The position numbers and the translations under genes are program-made. A stretch of 63,759 nucleotides of DNA, counting the filler, from Lenisia limosa (lineage: Eukaryota > Protista > Breviatea): the NCBI GenBank assembly GCA_001655205.1. It is 11 parts of 11 records of this genome, joined end to end, with 100 filler letters (N's around TTAATTAATTAA, not from the genome) between each part and the next. Parts side by side here need not be neighbours in the genome. Positions count along the whole stretch, not along the records: positions 31,897 to 43,508 come from LPNZ01008716.1; 10 more parts are not named here. One strand, written 5' to 3'. Positions 31,797-43,946 of the stretch are shown one piece after another. How positions within the stretch are numbered: position 1 is the first letter of the stretch; every line of letters starts with the position of its first letter. The notes under the pieces were generated by a model that searched no databases, had not been told where the DNA came from, and saw nothing but the letters and a program-made list of their open reading frames with translations.

Positions 31797-32589
31797 NNNN
31801 NNNNNNNNNNNNNNNNNNNNNNNNNNNNNNNNNNNNNNNNTTAATTAATTAANNNNNNNNNNNNNNNNNNNNNNNNNNNNNNNNNNNNNNNNNNNNATTC
31901 TCTCTATTTCAGTCGATAGAGTTTTCCTTTCTGAGTTAGAGGACCTTCTCACGAGCCACCTCCACGAGTTGAGCGGAACGTAGTACAGCGTACGAGTGGG
32001 TGGCTCGTGAGAAGACTCCTCTACGAAGAAGGAAAGCAACTCGACCGAGGACGAGAAGTTTGACAACGGGAAACCCTCAAAATTCGCGGTAGTTTATCAA
32101 TACTAACCTTTATATAATTGAATTAAAGACAACAAGTGCCTATAGAGGCATAGGGAGGAAAGACTAAATACTCAGAAGCTTTCCCAGTTCTTTAACTTGT
32201 TGTAATTATTGCATATTTTGTTAAAATATTAAAATATGATCTTACTAAAGACTACAGTCCTCATAGAAAGGATTGTTTGGATGCAATTCTCACATAAAAG
32301 GGGGTGATCTTGATGATCATCCAATGAAATAGATGATCACTTGATGGATAGATTTTTTTTTAAGATTTACATTTCACTCAATTTTATGATGTTGTTTTCA
32401 GCATATATGTTCACTCTGTATATGTGCTATATTTGGGTCATTTCACACGGAATGTTCTTGAATCATCTTCCTAATTACTTGTAAATTTGTGTTAAAGACA
32501 TTTGGAACTGCAATATTGCTTAAAAGTTGACGGTAAAGAACAATCTAGAAGGGGAGGCATCGGAGTTTTCCAAGAGTTTTGGGAGCTTC

Positions 32590-33308
32590 TCCATTGACTA
32601 ACCTTGTCCAGGCAACAGACATGACCGGCCAAAGCAACAAGGGAAACATGTCCTATGGATCCACCTATGTTGTTAAATAAGAAAGCCTTCTGCTCATAAT
32701 CAAATTAAACCATCTGCAAACCAAGGGATATAGATCTAAGCATTACAATAGTCTGCTATCAAAATTTGAGAAATAAATAATACATTGGAACCAGTTAAAT
32801 TTTATTAGACCTCAAGCCACCGCAGCCTACTTCTTCCACTTCGGGTTTCCCTTTGAATAAGGCTCCTCGCTGACGGGTTTGAAGACGCCAACAATCTTAC
32901 GGTCCTTGTCAAAACAAAAGTATGAGCCAGAGCTTCCCTGAGCAATGCGCTGCGGGTTGACTCCAAGAAGGATTGCCTAGGCTGTTAGAACTCTCTCACA
33001 ACCCTTAATCAAGACACGCTGTAATTAGACTCTCTTCGGCCCTCCCTCACTTCTTCAACAGACCGCAGTTGCTCCTGAAAATGAGCCTCGAACCCAGCTC
33101 GACTACAGGGTCAAAAAAGTGTGGCATTGGGGAAGGGCAAAAATGGCTCCCAAAGCAAACAGTGGGGTGAAGTCCACAGAAGGGTGGCCGACCTCCTCAT
33201 CCTATTTAGGTTATTTTCCAAATCGTACCACAAAAACAGGGTGGAGGGGCAAAGAGAAGAGCTTACAATGAGGGGTGAACATTCTAAACCTGCTTCTGAG
33301 TGGGCCAT
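32590..33308 (-). CDS. PI4K2: Phosphatidylinositol 4-kinase type II, 5' exons only
   Basis: [45 protein letters not shown]|[20 protein letters not shown] matches PI4K2/Lsb6 motifs. Later exons were not recognised before the scaffold edge. Confidence 0.85.
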
Positions 33309-33640
33309 TGCGGCTCAGATTAGGAAACCACCTTAATTTAACGCGAATTGGACTCAGGTTTCCCAGATCACTCCGCTCTGCGTAATTGGTGAAACAAACA
33401 AATTGGTTTAAAGTTTAAACTAGTCTCTTTATTGGCTCCGTTACAGTTTTTTGTTGATAATTATGGTCAAAGTGAGAAAAAAAAAAAACACTGTTTTCGC
33501 GCAAAAAATGGCGTGACACGCCAAAATGTGACATCATGCAAAAAATCGGGTGTTTTCGAATCCTCTTCAATATTTCAACCGGTTTTAGTCTGTGACCTTT
33601 AGATTTAAGGATTTAGTGAAGAGTTAGCTCTTTCCAAATC

Positions 33641-36342
33641 ATGAGACTCTCTCTCTTGTTTGTTTCCTTGGTCCTTCTAGGCTGTTATGCAGACCTTTCG
33701 GAATATATCATTAAGGTTTGGTTTTAGATTTACCATTTGCGCTGATTTTTTAGGACCCTTTCCCGGTAACAGGAAATGTTGACGACTGTTGTTTTGACGT
33801 TGAAGACCTCCACAAGCACGTTCCCTCAATGTTTAACCTTCTAGAAGATTTGACTGTTTGTTTAACATGGCAATTTTCACTTCCCTAGCACACCAATTTC
33901 TTCAAGTTCTTCAAAGTGAACTACCTTAGAGAATGCCCATTTTGGGCAGAAGAGTTCCTTTGCAGTGGGATGGGGTGCTAAGAGAACTAATACAGGGTTT
34001 TTTTTGGCAATTCTACATGCAAAAATTGACATTGGTCTAAAGTGTTGTTATGACGTAATACTTTTATACGCTTGAACCCCTTCTTTCTATCTTTTTACTG
34101 TATGGCTCATTTTCTCAGCTGAACAAGGTGGTGCCTGTTCAGTCTGCGAATGCAATGATGAAGAGGTTTGTATCTGTAGAGTTTTGAAAATTATTTCGCT
34201 TGGATCCGCTTCAATCAGCTGACTTGATTGCTTTGTTCTTGTTTTCTGGATGAATCAGTTGCTTTTACTTCCCCAACTAGATTCCTGAAACCTGGAGAGA
34301 TGTCAACGTAGACTTAAGTTCTCTCTCCAAATGGACAACAGACTTTCCTGAGTTGATGTTTACGCATGTTGACGATCAAGATGGTGGGATATAATGACGC
34401 CTGGCTCACATTTTCTTTTCGTCGTCTTAACCTCTTTAGTTAGGGCTTTTCATTACATATGCCATTAGGGTAAATATAACCTTATCATTTCGAGGAAGTT
34501 CGTTCTTAAGATGCAAAAGCTATATACAATTCTGTTTTGTCAACCATTCTGATGTGAACAGAAATGTCATATATCAACTTGCTGGAGAACCCTGAGAAGT
34601 ACACTGGATACTCTGGGTACAACTCAAGTCGCATATGGGCCGAAATCTACAAGCACAATTGCTTCCAAAGCGGTATGGAGGGGTGCTTTTTAAGTATTAA
34701 TTTGGGAGCTGAAGCAAAATCCAGCTTCGATTTGTTTATGTTTTGCATAATTCTATTTTTAAAATATAGGAGCCACAGTTTTCAAAAGAAGATTCAATGA
34801 TTTTTCAGGCCGGGTAGAAGAGATGTGCTTTGAAGAGCGTGTTTTCTTCCGTCTTGTCTCAGGCTTCCACGCATCAATCAACGCACATATTAGCTCTCGT
34901 TTCTTTGACTCTAATGGTTAGATGGGCCTTGAAAGTTCCTTCGTTTACCCATAACAATGATTATATCGTATACGTAAGTTTCTTTGAGATCACTGCAGAC
35001 CCCCACTCGCAAGGGAATTATGCTAACAATAGTTAAATCAGCCTGAAGCCCCCCCCCCCCTACGATTACAAGTCCCCGGTCACCCCACACCAGGTGAACG
35101 AGTGCCAAACTTTGAAATGTTCCGTTGGCGTCTCGGAGTCTTCCCGGATCGGGCCAAGAATATCTACTTCTCGTTCCTCTTCCTCACGAAGTGGGTGCTG
35201 TGGAACGAGATATTAAATTATTCATGCGAGAATATTTCGTCTTGACTAATTCTGACCATCAGAGCACTATCCCGCATCTCTGACCATCTCAACGAAATGT
35301 CTTTGGACACGGGCGACCAAGCAGCTGACCTTGTCACCAAGAATCTCATGTCCAAGCTGACTGCCCATCCGTTGGGGGGGGGGNNNNNNNNNNNNNNNNN
35401 NNNNNNNNNNNNNNNNNNNNNNNNNNNNNNNNNNNNNNNNNNNNNNNNNNNNNNNNNNNNNNNNNNNNNNNGACTCAGTTATTGTCACAGTATTTCTCAA
35501 AATCAAGGTACACCTTTACACTTGATCACTAAGAGGTCTCTATTTATTGTTATTGTTATTTTTTTCATCTGCTTTGTTTTTGTTTCCCAAAACTGGCTAT
35601 TATTAAGTTCTCTTATCCAAAAAAAAACACAGTATCACGGTGCCTAGGATTATCGATGAGGTGGAGCGTTTTGAGCTTTCGCACATGTTTGCCTCACAGG
35701 ACAAGGCCCAGTTGAGATCGGAGTTCCAAAAGAAGTTCGTTAACATCACGCAAATGATGGACTGTGTTGGGTGTGAGACCTGCAAGGTAGGAACCGGAAT
35801 GAGGCTTACAACATTTCTCAATTTATTCACCTTAAAAATCAATACCTGAGAATATTGAATCGAGTACTTACGTTTCCTATACATGTTACGATTTAGATCC
35901 ATGCCAAACTCCAACTTCTTGGTCTTGGAACCGCCCTCAAGGTTCTCCTCGCTAGTATGTTTATCTGTCCATATAAGAGATACAGGAGAAAAATCACCTT
36001 TTATTGACATGTTTATAATCATTGTTGATGACTTTGATTTCCACGTGTGCCCTCTTTTTTGCGGATCCTTAGATCGGCCTTCACCCCTCAGACGAAACTG
36101 ACATTCCCACGGTTGTCGCCACTTTGCAGCGAAATGAAGTGATCGCCCTCGTCAACTCTCTTGCCAAGTTCACTTCCGCCCTCCACATCTTTGATGAGAT
36201 GCATGATATTGTTGGGCAAGGGGTTTTTTTTTTGTTGAGCTAACCAATTTAGTATTACAAGCAATGGGATACCTACGTATACATTGCCTTCAACACGTTG
36301 TGTGTGTTTATTGTGGTTTTCTGTTGGGGCCGCAGGAGATAG
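33641..36342 (+). CDS. ERO1: Endoplasmic reticulum oxidoreductin 1 with predicted C-terminal transmembrane tail
   Basis: Signal peptide MRLSLLFVSLVLL, VDDCC, FFKFFKVNYLRECPFW, CSVCEC, INLLENPEKYTGYSG, FFRLVSGFHASIN, MDCVGCETCK, KLQLLGLGTALKVL, LQRNEVIALVNSL. Last exon YYKQWDTYVYIAFNTLCVFIVVFCWGRRR*. Confidence 0.95.
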
Positions 36343-36517
36343 TATGGTTCCGGTTCCGCTTTCTTTTTCACTTTTTTATGCATATGATATGATGTTTGTT
36401 TTGGCTCAACGTATCATTTTACCTAGTCTTTATTCCCTTACTGCCTTCTAAAAAACTATGAACTCGAAACAGTGTATTATACAATCTATCAAAATTACAT
36501 ACGGACAAGGGGAATAG

Positions 36518-38263
36518 TTACATCATCCAGGGGTTGCCCTTTGAAACGCCGCCTTGGACTCCGGCAATGTGGATCTGAATAGGTAACAGATTGGGCAAAT
36601 AGAAACAGTTCTAAGATGGGTGAATCTGTATTACAGTGAAAACGTAAACCCCCCTCACATGCACGGGGATGTTGACATTAGCGACATCCAGAGCCTCATC
36701 AACAGCTGTCATAAGACCGCCACAGCACGGCACACTCATGCGCAGGAGAGTGATGGACTATGAGTCGTTAATTACATTATTAGCTTTATAACACCCTGTT
36801 GGTTATTTGTCTAGTGCCTTATAAAGATTTAGTAAAGTTTCTTTCAATCTTCCCCACCTTAGGGGTTGAATTAGCGAAGATGTCAGCAAGCTTGTCAACA
36901 TTGGCCTGGCGGTTGTCCAATTTGGGGCACGCAATGACTACTGGGCGGCCGCGGAGGTATCTAAAAAGAATATGCAATTTAGGCCGAAGATGAAATGTAT
37001 CTAAAAATCCTTGGATACAGCTTAAAAAGGGGGGNNNNNNNNNNNNNNNNNNNNNNNNNNNNNNNNNNNNNNNNNNNNNNNNNNCTTCTAGATAATTCCT
37101 GGACTGAGCTCGATATTGAGGCGTACCTTGAATGGAAGTCGGGGATGGTGAAGGGTGAGCAGTCAGCCGCAACAAGAAGGTCCTCATCCTTGAAGACTGG
37201 GTTGGAGCCCTGGTTGAGACGGAGTTGGATGGGCCAATTGGCTGTATTAAATAAGTTATTCGTCCCAAAAAGACAGGGGGGGGGGGGGGNNNNNNNNNNN
37301 NNNNNNNNNNNNNNNNNNNNNNNNNNNNNNNNNNNNNNNNNNNNNNNNCTAATGAGTCAAAACGACCCAATACCAGAGCAAGTCTGGCAAACGACATGGC
37401 AACCACATTGCTCCTCCTGGTCTTACCCCACAAACAATTCAGCAGCCTTGTGCATTTTTTCCTTGATTTCAAGCTGCTTGAGATGGGCCTGGACGGCCGC
37501 CTCACTGTAGGGGTCCGACTCGCGCTGTTCAACTATAATGGCGTCTTGGGGGCACACCTTCAAACTGAAAGATTAGGATGAATTTGAGTCTGAAGAAGAT
37601 TGAATATCGTATTACCCATTTGTCTTGTAACTCTGCATGAATACACCATCGACCCCCATCCAAGCCCACCAGTCGCCAATACCGTCACAGAGGATCTCGC
37701 GGATCAAACGGGCCTTGCCTTCGACAATCTCAATGGCAGCTGAAAGGGTGAACAGACACCAGCAACTTCATCCCACGCTGCTTCAGCAGAACACTCTCTA
37801 CTCATAAAACATCAAAGAAACAATCCATGCGGGTGCGACTGACCTTCATGGCATGCCTTGACACATCTGAGAAATCAGAAAAAGGGAAGCAAAAGCTTAA
37901 AAATTGCATTTTTTGCTTTTATTTCAATTATGGATTTAGCTATACATGAATGCACGACAAAGGCTGGAAAGCATGAAGAAGAGCACAGGAAAATATCATT
38001 GGCTGGGAGCGTACTTGGCACATCCGTCGCATTTCTCGTCATCAAACCTCACAATGTTGCGAATGATCTTAGGTAAAGGGCCCTGGGCGATTAGGATAAC
38101 ACTTTCGGGCACTCAGTCTCTTACAAAGTTGTTATTATTACATCCCATGAGTGTAGCTCCTGCTGTAAACCTCGCAACAGACTGCGAGAACACTAAAGGC
38201 AATAAGATTGGGAGCTTCCTTACGAGATTTTCCGAGAACTGCACTGAAAAGTCGTAACGCCAT
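36518..38263 (-). CDS. 4Fe-4S dicluster (ferredoxin-like) protein of the anaerobic-bacterial WPxQL/CPKLD/VPCC type, with mitochondrial-like presequence
   Basis: Spliced: MALRLFSAVLGKS...IIRNIVRFDDEKCDGCAK|CVKACHEG|AIEIVEGKARLIREILCDGIGDC|LKVCPQDAI...NWPIQLRL...DLLVAADCSPF...GRPVVIACPKLD...SITLLRMSVPCCGGL...PWMM*. Confidence 0.85.
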
Positions 38264-38440
38264 TGTTTAACTGTTTATACGTTTTATTTGCGCAAAAAAA
38301 TTGAAAAATGCAAAACAAAGACTGATATTAACCCCGCACATTATACCCCTTGTTACGAATAACGGTGTTGTGCCTCTTTCTTGCCTCTTCCTGATGGTGA
38401 AACAATAGTTATTTAGTGGTTGATTGAAGATCAGATAATA

Positions 38441-41400
38441 ATGGTTCGAAAACGTTCTTCTCAGCAGGAAGAAAAGAAAATGTTTACCAACCCTGTCCAT
38501 AAACCTAATAGGTCGTCTTCTTTGAGCATCCCCCTGTTTATGCTAGTGTTGACAGCAATAGCAATTGTATCGTTATCACTTTGGGCTGGAGTTCTTGTTG
38601 GATTTGGTCGAAGAGGACACTATGGTCCACATGACTTCACGATCAAGGATTATGCGTCATTCACTGAAGAAGCCCAAGTGGAGCATACGCAGGCAACCGG
38701 TGAGCTTTAGTTTATTATGGAGGATGGCATGTGGCCGGATGCAGATAGGCCTTGCAGTGGCGGTCTTGTTTTTCACCCGTTTAGGCCATAAAACCAGTAT
38801 CCCCCCTCTTTCCCAGTCCCTGACAGATGACCTTCTATGGGGTACCTACAGACCCCAGGTTTGCTTCATTAACTATAAAATTAACTAAAATAATCACTAA
38901 TATGGACGGATATACGGATGTGTTAACGGGGAATGGTCTCTCCATATGAGAAAGGAAAAACAGCATGGTTAAGTGTCTCTCAATTATTGATTAGTAGAGT
39001 CTGCCCTAACTCATTAGGTATACATGGGAACAAAGACGCGGACAGAAGTACCAGTCTCCACGGGAGTGATGTATTGGGACGCCACAAATGCTGGAATTGA
39101 CAAGAGTATGCTGGGAGGTGTCGTCATCACTGGTCAATACCGTTGCAAAATGTGTGCATTTGTTTTTTCGTTTAGTAAAGCAGATCAAATGTAATATGAA
39201 AGACACGAACAGAAAACATATTTCTCCTAGTATGGTACTTTTCCTTCCTCAGGCAGCAATAAATCACGATCTAGAAATCCGACACAAGGCTGAGATGCAA
39301 CATGGTATCTCCTACAGTTGGACCCGGCATGACGGACGCCATCTTGCGGAACAAACAATGAAAGACTCCAAAATGGGTGTTCGCACTGAAATGTCCTGGC
39401 TGTCCGCACCGCGACACGTTGATGGTAGGCATCGCTTTGAATGAGTTTTTGTATCAATGATATTATTACGTATGCTGGAGTGATGTGATGCGGTGCTGTA
39501 GAAGTGACTGGCCTGGGCTTTGTNNNNNNNNNNNNNNNNNNNNNNNNNNNNNNNNNNNNNNNNNNNNNNNNNNNNNNNNNNNNNNNNNNNNNNNNNNNNN
39601 NNNNNNNNNNNNNNNNNNNNTTTACTCCCCCAGGCGGCGACTGGGTAATGCGTGTGTCCATGACGGCAATGACTCAGTCCGAACGCGCAGCACAAACCAT
39701 TGAGAAAACCGTATACTGGCAGCCACCGCCAAAGGAAATCGCCATGGCATTCTACCTTGGGCAAGACAAGTGGGTCAAGTGCACGGTTTCCATTCAGGTT
39801 CCGGTTTCATTACATTTGAGTTTTCCTTTTTTTACTGTACTGTAGCTTTTTTTTCTTCACATTTCCACATATTGTAAAAAGGACCAGTATGATGGCAGCA
39901 GCAAATAGATTTATAAATTGCCACCGTCCTTGGTGACAAACGCCGCCTCTCACCCAGTAGACCAGAAGAAGGCTGGCTGGACCCGCCCCACCTTGTAGCC
40001 GCGGCCGGCGACCGGGTGAGCATCACCGGCGGCGTCGACGGTCCGGTCGCCCTGTTCCAGACCCTCGTCAAACCAAGCAGCAATTCGTGGGATGAAATGG
40101 CTTCACTTTTTGGTCATAAGGGTGTTCCGAATACTTCATCAGTACTATAAATAGCATGGGTTACCGGTTTTTGTAATATTTCAGGACAAAATTCACATCT
40201 TCCTCTTTTATGAGTCTCAAAGACAACGCAACATGGAAGGCCGAGGTTTGCTGGATGGTTATAAATGGATTCGACCTGTTGATTTGAATGGGGATATTGC
40301 TGATAAAGCTATTATTCAGGATGATAGAATGTCGGGGTTTATTGACAACCTGTTATTATTGCTATAAACGTTTCAGTCAGTATAGTATGGAATTGTTCCG
40401 GTGTCTTTTACACCAAGGGCAAGCCCTACTTTTTTTCTCTAATTGACATGACCATATAGGACATTCTGTCCTCCGAAATGAGGCGGCAGGCGTTTGAGCG
40501 CACTTCCTTGCGCGAAACAGCTCAAGTGTCGCGTGACTCCCTCCCCAATGTCAACACACAGGGGGCCGATCTAGCCATTGTTATGGTAGGAATGCGGACG
40601 ATGTGCATTAACATGCTGTTTTTTATGGCTTTATGCTGTGGTGTAATTATCCTAAGGGCCTTATTAATATTTGAAATACACGTATTTACATTCTGAACAA
40701 ACAGCAGGCGACTTCGACATGAATCCTATATCAATCTTTTTGATCAAAACCTAATATATTATCCTTCTTATCTGGTCAATATTCATTAAGTTCGCATATC
40801 TGACCGAAAGGTAACTGCTGAGCTTCCCGCATCCTTTGACATTGTCTTCACGTCACTGAACGGCAGAAGTGCAGCGGAGGTCAAGGTCACTGATGACAGG
40901 TGCTCAGGGTGAACACTGAATCTTTGAAGGGTCTATAAGGGGCTGTACCCATCTAAACGGTGGTATCATTTGACTCATGGGGTGCTTTTCATCCGAACAA
41001 CCTGAGTAGTGCGTGATATTGCTGGTTCTGTGATATAAGTACATATATATTACTCCTCTTGTACTTACATATCAGTATGTCTGGAGTGCACCTCGGTCCT
41101 CGCCTCGACGCTGGAAGACAGCACTTCGATGACAAACTCTCAAGATCCTTCAAACTCCCCATCTCGGATGAGTCTTTTTTGTGGGCTTCTTACTTTTTTT
41201 TTTTTTTATTCACCAACTCATTAATCAGCTTTTAAGCCAAGCTTTAGTTATTGTCATTGTGTAACCTTTAGTGCAAATATTATTCCTTTCAGTTTCTTAA
41301 CTTATTCTGCGTAGGCCCGGTGTGCCCCTTGAAGACGCCCAGAAAATGATGTCTGACGCCTTGTCATCCGTGATTGGAGGAATTGGGTGGGCTATTGGTT

Positions 41401-43446
41401 GGTTCTGGAAATAGATGGAGGAAATAGTAGAGTATTATTTTATAATATTCCTGAACCAGTAGTTTTAACTGTGTACATAATATATCATATGAAAAACGTG
41501 TTCAAGCATATTTGGGCTCGGTCGTAACTAATCCTAGGTGGTTCACCGGACGCGGAAGACACCAGGAAGGCCGGGATATTGTCAAGTCCAAGTTCATGAC
41601 TCTTTACACCGGGGTTCCTTCAAGGTGTGGGGGGCTTCATTTTAGTAAGGTTAATTGTGAAGTGAGGAAGCTTTGTATTTTATTTCAGAAAATGTTTGCT
41701 CCCTATGAGTTTGGCACGAACTTCTCCAAACCTTTTTGGCCGAGAGCTTGGTACATTCTTGTCATTTGTCGGTATCAGGCCTCACAATGCAGATCATTTT
41801 TCCCCCGCGGCTTCCTTTGGGATGAAGGATTCCATCAAATTCTCATTTCCATGTTTGATCGCGAAATTGCGTGAGAAGGGCTTGGAACTTTTATTCTTCT
41901 GAGAAAGTATAGATACAATTATGTTTTAGCTTTGTTAATTTACATGGGCTTTACCTGGAAATATAGCTCAATATCCCCAAATGAGTGTGATGGTTGCAGT
42001 ATGGAGTGCATGCGATCGTGGCTCAACAACATGGATGAGGACGGATGGGTCCCCCGAGAGATGATCCTGGGAGACGAGGCTGCTTCAAAGGTTGGCGCGA
42101 GGACCAAGTGCCATTTCATGGGTTCCATTATATCAATTTGAAAATTCCAATTTTGAGAAATCAAGACCCGAATCGTATTGGGTATTATAGTTTATATATA
42201 TATATATATACATATATATAGTCAAAGCTTCGGACATCATTCAAAATCTCTGGACACATCAAAACTCCCGGACAGCTTGAATTTTCCTTATAAAAGTACA
42301 TAGTACTTCCCGATATTTTCGAAAGTAATTTCAGTTAGAATGCGGTTTTTTTTCATATTCTTGGCTCAAACCCAAATTAAGTCACTTGTATTAAACTGCC
42401 AAAAAGAACCAAAACCGTTATAATCGGCCACATTCAAGGAATAAATGGCAACTATCCGGGAAAGTATGACCTTGTAGAAAGCACTATTTTGAACATTTTT
42501 CTCTCAAAATTCACCATTACATAGCCAAAGCAAGGAATCCATAACCAATTACTCCGAGGGGTACAAATTTTTGTTTCTTGACACTAAAAGAGGGATAGAT
42601 TTAGAAAAAAATCCCGGGAGACTAAATTCACGGATTTTTGACACTTGCTCAAAATTGAAAAAAAAAAAGTTGGGAAACATTAAGAGGTCATTTTCTCTAT
42701 ATATCTGTCGAACCAGTTTTGCATTAAACACTACCGTTGATCCATACAAGGGGTTAACTTCAAGCTGTCCGGGAGTTTTGATGTGTCCGGTGAATTTTGA
42801 ATGCTGTCCGGAGCTTTGAGGACCCACATATATTATATATTTTTACACCTCCTGTCATTGGTCACAAATCACTCGTTTGATATTTGTACATCAATTATAT
42901 TTTACTTTACTATTATGGGCTATCTTTTCAAATTAGTATTATCCAAATTCCCTTTAAGTCTTTTACAATCGTAATATTGCAGGTACCACCAGAATTCCAA
43001 GTCCAGCGACAGAACATTGCCAACCCGCCCACTTTCATATTTGCCCTGAACAACCTCATCAACCACGGCGGTCTTCTTGAGGTCGGCTTGGGTTTGAATT
43101 GAAATAACAACACCGAATGGAATTTCTCTTTGTGGGTGGTGGCTCTACTTTCATGTTATTTTCATTGCCAAGAGTTTTAACATACCTATTTAACCCCTCG
43201 ACAGCAAGCTTTTGTTCGTTTTGCTCTTCCTCGGTTCGGACAGCACTCTCTCTGGCTCNNNNNNNNNNNNNNNNNNNNNNNNNNNNNNNNNNNNNNNNNN
43301 NNNNNNNNNNNNNNNNNNNNNNNNNNNNNNNNNNNNNNNNNNNNNNNNNNNNNNNNNNNCATTCCGAAGAGTACTTACTCAGTAGTCGCGCTCACAAGGG
43401 GGATACTGGTGGCATGGAACGAAGGGCATCCACACGCTGGCCTCAG
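38441..43446 (+). CDS. MOGS: Mannosyl-oligosaccharide glucosidase (glucosidase I, GH63), 3'-partial
   Basis: Type II membrane N-terminus, [49 protein letters not shown]|VPPEFQVQ...ANPPT, HTLASG. Confidence 0.93.
42221..42827. mobile_element. Non-autonomous TIR element M3, about 610 bp, in a MOGS intron
   Basis: About 65-bp inverted ends containing CCGGACA subrepeats (CAAAGCTTCGGACATCATTCAAAATCTCTGGACACATCAAAACTCCCGGACAGCTTGAA and its reverse complement), in a TA-rich flank. A 150-bp end-copy lies at 26821-26970 in a citrate synthase intron. Confidence 0.85.
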
Positions 43447-43946
43447 GTGGGAGCCAAGAGTTTGTCTCTGTCTCTTCAACAATACAATACAAGCATACAC
43501 AAGCATACNNNNNNNNNNNNNNNNNNNNNNNNNNNNNNNNNNNNNNNNNNNNTTAATTAATTAANNNNNNNNNNNNNNNNNNNNNNNNNNNNNNNNNNNN
43601 NNNNNNNNTTAAAGCAGGGTTTCAAATGGGGATGTTAAAGGAAGGCTTATTCTTCGATAATTAATCTATTATCCTAGACAACTTTCCCATTAAGAACCGC
43701 AATTGCCTTTATCTTATTCTCCTTATGATCCATGTTTATTCCTTAGAAGGAAGCGAATCATTTCAACTCTTTATCTTATTTCGCCTTGTCATTAGAGCGT
43801 CACTTCGGTTCAAATAATTACTGAATTTATTTTATCAGTCTTTTTTTTTAACCGAAATGAAGCCGTACTTACCATACTTTTTCCTTGAAACGATTCTCTG
43901 AACACTTTATTGCCTGTATATATCATATATGCCCAATGATTATTCC

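Follow-up and report, generated by a model that had tools for sequence, protein, structure and literature searches.

The locus described here raises the question of how a protist came to encode a 4Fe-4S protein of the kind found in anaerobic bacteria, and what such a protein might do in its host. The DNA analyzed (hereafter, the window) is a stretch of 63,759 nucleotides from the breviate Lenisia limosa (GenBank assembly GCA_001655205.1), in which pieces that are not necessarily neighbours in the genome are joined. The gene lies in an 11.6-kb piece of it (positions 31,897 to 43,508, from LPNZ01008716.1), on the minus strand at 38263..36518. An initial annotation, made from the sequence alone, had proposed a heavily intron-split protein of this type, imported into a mitochondrion. 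We found that the gene of L. limosa is genuine, nuclear and expressed, and that it is rich in introns, with 11 exons and 10 GT..AG introns. Judged by gene neighbourhood in prokaryotes and by the literature description, its product is a member of the bacterial FrdX family. The best overall explanation, and a fairly probable one, is a transferred FrdX that would act as a partner of hybrid cluster protein (Hcp) and would be imported into an organelle.

Between 38263 and 36518, the minus strand possesses no long open frame. The motifs named in the initial annotation are all present on this strand, split over separate short frames in different exons: CDGCAK/CVKACHE, CDGIGD/CLKVCP, WPIQL, AADC, CPKLD and VPCC (slashes mark exon boundaries). 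The spliced protein was reached by a word search in which a stop-free frame (36822-37532) served as the length carrier and only residues 189-230, encoded by exon 9, scored. This search returned P0001 (EukProt EP01086_Lenisia_limosa_P007246), a transcriptome-derived protein of 270 amino acids labelled 'ORF type complete', and P0001 was used as the query for all searches with the spliced protein. By tblastn of P0001 against the piece, every exon present matched with 100% identity, and residues 134-146 had no match in the window.

The stretch is covered by two public sequencing runs from one study, and their contigs were aligned to the gene. An RNA contig from a polyA library (run X2, 869 nt) matches the gene in spliced form, with nine joints. 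Of these, eight are directly GT..AG on the gene strand (CT..AC on the plus strand), and the ninth bridges an exon hidden by an assembly gap, where a true donor GT and acceptor AG are also present. The joints include both flanks of a 23-nt micro-exon (37866-37844) and introns of 31 and 42 nt. Thus, the micro-exon is confirmed, and the earlier estimate of about nine or more introns becomes ten.

Gaps in the scaffold required separate consideration. A contig of the other run (X1) spans the two gaps within the gene, with 11 and 16 letters fewer than their lengths as estimated by N's. The gap at 37035-37084 lies within intron 8. In the RNA contig, 37127 is followed immediately by 36960, and the codon phases are compatible. 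Therefore, no coding sequence is lost at this gap. At the gap 37290-37348, the RNA contig has 39 letters, between 37435 and 37242, for which the window has no counterpart. These letters, together with one G at each flank, make a 41-nt exon 7 that encodes GRTDSDEVPEPEL (residues 134-146). Because they encode exactly the residues of P0001 that found no match, we conclude that this gap conceals one small exon. The minus-strand sequence beside the gap reads ...CATTAG up to 37349, which fits an acceptor, and exon 6 joined straight to exon 8 would be out of frame. A short intronic 'GRFDS' at 37365-37353 on the minus strand resembles 'GRTDS' in the hidden exon; it has no acceptor and is not used by the RNA, and the resemblance is probably due to chance. 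It should be mentioned that, on the plus strand, poly-G runs precede three of the five gaps in the piece (35374-35383, 10 G; 37029-37034, 6 G; 37275-37289, 15 G). These contig ends may be sequencing artefacts or true G-runs that broke the assembly, and letters adjoining these gaps are to be distrusted.

At the 5′ end, an in-frame TAA is present two codons upstream of the ATG at 38263. Exon 2 starts at position 59 of the RNA record and the coding part of exon 1 is 40 nt. Therefore, exon 1 occupies record positions 19-58, and the contig reaches 18 nt 5′ of the ATG. Because the RNA extends beyond the ATG and an in-frame stop lies upstream, the N-terminal extension belongs to the message. The initial annotation had asked whether transcripts begin downstream of this point; the RNA includes both the ATG and the extension. 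At the other end, the contig continues past the stop codon to 36509. The visible exons and the hidden 41-nt exon total 813 nt, which corresponds to 270 codons and the stop. The GC content is 52% in exons and 41.5% in introns. The GC content at third codon positions (GC3) is 0.60, and that of one neighbouring exon is similar, although the sample is very small. The density of ten introns over an 813-nt coding sequence, the GC contrast, the GC3 value and the additional N-terminal exons are signs of a long residence of the gene in this genome.

P0001 is composed of a 40-residue N-terminal extension, a ferredoxin-like two-cluster domain and an AF_0155 domain. In Pfam, Fer4_6, Fer4_10 and Fer4_7 scored above their cut-offs, and the ferredoxin-type domain was placed at residues 46-100. 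By its motifs, the ferredoxin-like domain spans residues 44-104 and contains the canonical CxxCxxCxxxC and a second motif, C-D-G-x-G-x-C-xxx-C-P. The C-terminal half (residues about 146-265) is PF27217 (AF_0155) in the precomputed Pfam list. When single exons were compared with Pfam and NCBIfam, only a sub-threshold Fer4_6 match was obtained. Relatives of P0001 are numerous: the word search gave more than 1100 matches and an exhaustive profile search gave 338 representative clusters at E<=1e-30. They are 215-310 amino acids in length, are labelled '4Fe-4S binding protein', 'ATP-binding protein' or 'ferredoxin', and are 40-51% identical to P0001. As the initial annotation had supposed, this is an architecture of anaerobic bacteria and archaea, encoded in at least 566 species-level genomes. 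P0001 and the prokaryotic members align over their full length and collinearly (E 1e-59 to 1e-66), with the same order of Fer4 and AF_0155 domains over residues 43-265.

The alignment showed which residues are constant in the family. In the ferredoxin part, C54, C57, C60, C64, C84, D85, G86, G88, C90, C94 and P95 are invariant, seven of which are cysteines. In the AF_0155 domain, W149, P150, Q152, C174, C196, K198, M226, V228, P229 and C231 are invariant and C230 is nearly so; the corresponding motifs WPxQ, ADC, CPK(L)D and MxVPCC are present in P0001. Thus, the Lenisia protein keeps all the invariant features of the bacterial family. Across the family, the second Fe-S motif takes the form C-D-G-[LIM]-G-x-C-xxx-C-P, without the cysteine normally found in second place and with an invariant aspartate after the first cysteine. 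This points to a 3Fe-4S cluster, or to a 4Fe-4S cluster in which one ligand is not a cysteine. Most bacterial members also possess a linker motif G-C-P-G-S/T, often C-G-C-P-G-S, at alignment columns of about 205-215. The linker of the Lenisia protein is short (residues 125-146) and is partly encoded by the hidden 41-nt exon.

AlphaFold2 models were confident, with a predicted local distance difference test (pLDDT) value of 84 over the full length and 89 when the C-terminal domain was modelled alone. In these models, the C-terminal domain is an alpha/beta sandwich, and its cysteines directly follow three consecutive parallel beta strands. Neither the whole model nor the C-terminal domain alone gave a match at Z>=8 in fold searches; therefore, AF_0155 is not assigned to any solved fold. 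The matches obtained were generic parallel alpha/beta (Rossmann-like) folds at Z 5-6.6, among which beta-carbonic anhydrases recur. Beta-carbonic anhydrases bind metal through cysteines in comparable positions. We infer that the modelled AF_0155 domain may bind a metal or an Fe-S centre. A sequence search of the PDB returned ferredoxin domains only, and in the literature 'AF_0155' matched nothing but accession numbers.

The origin of the gene was examined against a protein collection, EukProt included, of about 15 billion entries. P0001 matched itself with 616 bits, and the next matches, all bacterial or metagenomic, scored 216-240 bits. No relative in this collection exceeded 51% identity. 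One further eukaryote, Mastigamoeba balamuthi, was found among the sources of the 20 of the 150 best representatives that were checked. Since no match is closer than 51% and only one other eukaryote is found among the matches checked, gene transfer is the best reading, and orthologues widespread among eukaryotes were not seen in these matches. In the trees, the gene falls among bacterial sequences. The Lenisia branch is long (1.5 changes per site), and the sequences closest to it are Zixibacteria/GN15-like. In the quick tree, limited to the 68 rows with the best scores (69 when both eukaryotes are included), an 18-row set containing Lenisia and Zixibacteria/GN15 received 96% SH-aLRT. Rows with wrong-strand open reading frames (ORFs) and very long branches were left out of the trees (L052, L066, L080, L061, L050 and L073, then L014, L062 and L079). 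In a later tree, 14 redundant rows, chiefly of Bacillota and Planctomycetota, were also dropped (L046, L048, L031, L054, L047, L049, L026, L023, L024, L025, L060, L055, L036 and L022). We consider it very probable that the gene was acquired laterally from an anaerobic bacterium and then gained a host-like intron density and the N-terminal extension; the nearest sequences, though not necessarily those of the donor, are Zixibacteria/GN15-like.

The Mastigamoeba homologue (EP00727_P007385; hereafter P0200) is a 659-residue gene model in which residues 335-656 form a full FrdX-like unit, 42-48% identical to the Lenisia protein. A RING-finger region lies upstream of this unit at residues 278-320; this fusion may be a merged annotation. 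P0200 has no presequence comparable to the Lenisia extension and takes a place apart from Lenisia in the best tree. Its best matches are from Bacteroidales (45-51% identity by BLASTP; in the trimmed alignment used for the trees, up to 59%), and the careful maximum-likelihood tree places it inside a Bacteroidales-type clade with support of 100/100. When Lenisia and Mastigamoeba were constrained to a single clade, two approximately unbiased (AU) tests gave p values of 0.31 and 0.24 and did not reject this grouping. We favour two separate transfers, as a likely rather than an established history.

The link to hybrid cluster protein comes from the prokaryotic relatives. We surveyed 80 prokaryotic loci, in which neighbours within 3 kb were clustered and annotated. 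The commonest neighbour was a Crp/Fnr-family regulator (30 loci), and hcp, which encodes hybrid cluster protein of the Prismane family, was found near frdX in 20 loci, 13 of which have it on the same strand within 300 bp. An HD-domain protein was found in 11 loci and Rrf2 regulators in seven. At least one of hcp, Crp and Rrf2 was a neighbour in 39 of the 66 loci with a recognised FrdX ORF; other neighbours encode HD-domain, Fer4_5 and multihaem proteins. In the Zixibacteria loci nearest to Lenisia in the tree (L004 and L007), the gene order is crp-frdX-(Fer4_5)-hcp. The initial annotation had named an FrdX-like, hcp-linked type, and this survey bears that out, as does the literature: frdX belongs to the HcpR regulon (PMC1274295), and nitric oxide (NO) induces both frdX and hcp of C. 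difficile about 200-fold, knock-down of either gene causing NO sensitivity (PMC12915319). The C. difficile authors state that the exact function of FrdX remains unclear (PMC12915319). By gene neighbourhood and the published description, the Lenisia protein is equated with such bacterial proteins as CDR20291_2075 of C. difficile and FrdX of Desulfovibrio.

In Zixibacteria/GN15 loci L005, L007 and L008, a gene for a 381-residue Fer4_5 and Fer4 protein (NapH/RdxA-like membrane Fe-S type) lies directly downstream of frdX; in L007 it stands between frdX and hcp. Multihaem cytochrome genes lie nearby. These gene orders hint that, in the bacteria most closely related to Lenisia in this family, electrons may take a route linked to the membrane.

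Known systems offer two further comparisons. Hcr of E. coli, the NADH oxidoreductase of Hcp, has an unrelated fold and unrelated cofactors, namely FAD and a 2Fe-2S cluster. The role proposed for it, an electron donor encoded beside hcp, is the same (PMC1274295), and the likeness is an analogy only. The laterally acquired SMS/SUF-like system, pyruvate:ferredoxin oxidoreductase (PFO) and [FeFe]-hydrogenase of breviates, described in a breviate preprint (10.64898/2026.01.29.702055), show the same pattern of a bacterial gene, a targeting extension and an organelle function, although the FrdX-like protein belongs to a different family.

How the protein might work can be outlined on this basis. The two ferredoxin-type clusters would hand on electrons, either to a site built from the AF_0155 cysteines or to a partner docked to the protein. 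In the organelle, PFO and ferredoxin could supply electrons to an imported FrdX-like protein. By analogy with the bacterial gene clusters, the partner would be a reductase of the Hcp type that clears NO or hydroxylamine. That the Lenisia protein may pass low-potential electrons to such a reductase in NO defence is a tentative proposal, to which we give nearly as much credence as doubt.

Import into an organelle was considered from the N-terminal extension. The extension is encoded by exons 1 and 2 and the start of exon 3; it begins MALRLFSAVLGKS and continues through exon 2 as LFSQSVARFTAGATLMGCNNNNF. The initial annotation had read its beginning correctly and had noted an absence of acidic residues, which holds for all positions before D50; its unspliced continuation was wrong, because the second exon was missed. 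Bacterial homology starts near R44, within exon 3. The extension has many L, A, S and F residues and carries four basic ones, R4, K12, R21 and K41; its composition is thus basic, hydroxylated and acid-free, as in presequences. On balance, we take it as slightly more likely than not that the extension is a presequence that would import the protein into the hydrogenosome-like organelle.

Several observations weigh against parts of this explanation. In a crude test, the maximal hydrophobic moment of the extension was 0.30, a value reached by 1427 of 2000 shuffles; the first 11-residue windows gave 0.44-0.51. The Lenisia protein does not possess the GCPGS linker motif, like a minority of bacterial members. 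An old horizontal acquisition had been suggested in the initial annotation, and the close matches are indeed all prokaryotic or metagenomic, but the careful trees gave no strongly supported set or sister for the long-branch Lenisia sequence. The knock-down of C. difficile frdX could be polar on hcp because the two genes share a promoter, and electron transfer between FrdX and Hcp has never been demonstrated biochemically. Finally, tblastn detected neither hcp nor crp in the 11.6-kb Lenisia piece, to which this search was confined; operon linkage with hcp is not expected in a eukaryote. In sum, unlike bacterial frdX, the Lenisia gene has ten introns, a 40-residue extension and a shorter linker, and has no hcp or hcpR beside it.

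The strongest competing explanation is that the FrdX-like protein, laterally acquired in the same way, is cytosolic, and that its N-terminal 40 residues are not an import signal. This would agree with the outcome of the crude amphipathicity test, which was not significant, and with the Mastigamoeba homologue, in which a RING-finger region is found upstream instead of such a presequence. However, the extension is exactly the part without a counterpart in nearly all bacterial homologues. It occupies separate exons, its first 49 positions contain no acidic residue and it carries the four basic residues; moreover, R21-F22|T23 resembles an R-2 processing site by eye, and model confidence is low over residues 1-30 (pLDDT about 50). 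Therefore, we regard a cytosolic protein as a serious but less probable alternative to an imported one.

Another explanation concerns the partner. The protein might be a general low-potential carrier of the hydrogenosome-like organelle (between PFO, hydrogenase or NuoE/F), or the partner of some other reductase, with no connection to Hcp or NO. About half of the prokaryotic loci have no hcp, Crp or Rrf2 neighbour, HD-domain, Fer4_5 and multihaem neighbours also occur, and PFO, ferredoxin and the [FeFe]-hydrogenase HydA are assigned to breviate organelles, all of which would suit such a carrier. In contrast, hcp and the regulators are by far the commonest conserved neighbours, also in the nearest relatives, and the presence of a conserved AF_0155 domain, which has a cysteine site of its own, speaks for a specific partner and against a plain ferredoxin. 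Thus, a general carrier is unlikely.

On the reading of the initial annotation, the protein would serve an undescribed low-oxygen pathway in the mitochondrion of a host that also possesses OGDH, which amounts to an aerobic, amoebal setting. The N-terminal extension is the sole support for import into such a mitochondrion. L. limosa is an obligately anaerobic breviate, which in the preprint (10.64898/2026.01.29.702055) is described as living only in anoxic habitats and having hydrogenosome-like mitochondrion-related organelles; breviate organelles are predicted there to hold PFO, ferredoxin, HydA, ASCT and SCS, and no transcripts for alpha-ketoglutarate dehydrogenase, aconitase or isocitrate dehydrogenase are reported for any breviate. 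The OGDH sequence itself lies in a different piece of the window, which has no relation to this one. The aerobic setting is therefore dropped, and we consider this explanation very improbable; the finding has no bearing on aerobic mitochondria. An anaerobe-type Fe-S protein in Lenisia is expected rather than paradoxical. The same preprint describes many lateral acquisitions in breviates, and its main text does not mention the FrdX-like protein.

Table 1 Features of the FrdX-like gene of L. limosa. Positions are those of the window; residues are numbered as in P0001.
Feature	Position	Strand	Content	Evidence
5′ untranslated leader	38264..38281	-	at least 18 nt; in-frame TAA 38269-38267	RNA contig
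Exon 1	38224..38263	-	M1-S13 and 1 nt; start of extension	tblastn 100%; joint 38192/38224 skips 31 nt, GT..AG
Exon 2	38125..38192	-	L14-F36 (LFSQSVARFTAGATLMGCNNNNF); further extension	tblastn, RNA; intron 2 is 42 nt, GTAAGA..CCCAG
Exon 3	38015..38082	-	G37-K59; first half of Fe-S motif I (C54, C57)	tblastn, RNA, alignment
Exon 4	37844..37866	-	23-nt micro-exon, CVKACHE (C60, C64)	RNA joints 37739/37844 and 37866/38015, both GT..AG
Exon 5	37670..37739	-	A67-D89 (C84 of motif II)	tblastn, RNA
Exon 6	37436..37564	-	C90-L133 (C90, C94-P95, helical linker)	tblastn, RNA; donor GT 37435-37434
Gap	37290..37348	-	hides exon 7 and the start of intron 7	RNA contig, tblastn
Exon 7			41 nt, absent from the window; last base of L133 codon, G134-L146, first base of A147 codon
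Exon 8	37127..37241	-	start of AF_0155 (NWPIQL ... AADC ... FHS)	tblastn, RNA, alignment
Gap in intron 8	37035..37084	.		RNA join 37127/36960
Exon 9	36858..36960	-	(R)YLRGRPVVIACPKLD...TPK (C196)	word search, tblastn, RNA
Exon 10	36659..36757	-	SITLLRMSVPCC...PVH (C230, C231)	tblastn, RNA
Exon 11	36518..36574	-	IHIAGVQGGVSKGNPWMM and TAA stop 36520-36518	tblastn, RNA

The neighbouring genes are also of eukaryotic type, and both belong to the endoplasmic reticulum. An exon of ERO1 (endoplasmic reticulum oxidoreductin) is found at 34564-34671 on the plus strand (Pfam PF04137, E 4.7e-14), and the scaffold is therefore ordinary eukaryotic nuclear DNA. On the other side, exons of a glycoside hydrolase family 63 (GH63) gene, encoding mannosyl-oligosaccharide glucosidase, occupy about 39250-41871 on the plus strand as many short exons, in which both Pfam domains of the family are recognised, the N-terminal at E 1.4e-07 and the C-terminal at 2.4e-12. 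The GH63 gene points away from the FrdX-like gene, and the two starts are roughly 1 kb apart. Bacterial contamination or an assembly chimera, which the mixed-community culture, a library labelled metatranscriptomic and the gapped scaffold might suggest, has a negligible probability, because ten GT..AG introns are spliced out in the polyA-library RNA contig, the coding sequence cannot be interpreted without splicing and the flanking genes are eukaryotic; the splicing evidence rules it out.

The Lenisia protein adds a eukaryotic member to a bacterial family already known, and its evolutionary pattern is known as well; in this respect, it is a modest addition. FrdX is a widespread, biochemically uncharacterised partner of hybrid cluster protein in anaerobes. 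Its presence in two anaerobic protists, one with a probable presequence, makes it a candidate addition to the borrowed bacterial anaerobic toolkit. Mastigamoeba balamuthi is also reported to have hcp (priS; PMC1484493). The gene is a clean example of a transferred gene that gained ten introns, a 23-nt micro-exon and a two-exon N-terminal extension.

For the organism itself, a role in NO defence would suit Lenisia, because denitrifying Arcobacter epibionts live on its surface. The epibiont Arcobacter EP1 is a complete denitrifier fed by H2 from the protist (PMC12453579), and NO is therefore made at the surface of Lenisia. It is conceivable, though in this full form improbable, that an imported FrdX diverts electrons from PFO and ferredoxin to an Hcp-type reductase and thereby detoxifies NO leaking from these epibionts. 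The Lenisia FrdX thus provides a testable idea for how the host tolerates NO beside denitrifying bacteria. If this idea is true, it would represent an organellar nitrosative-stress chain of the HcpR-regulon type in a eukaryote, tied to a specific symbiosis.

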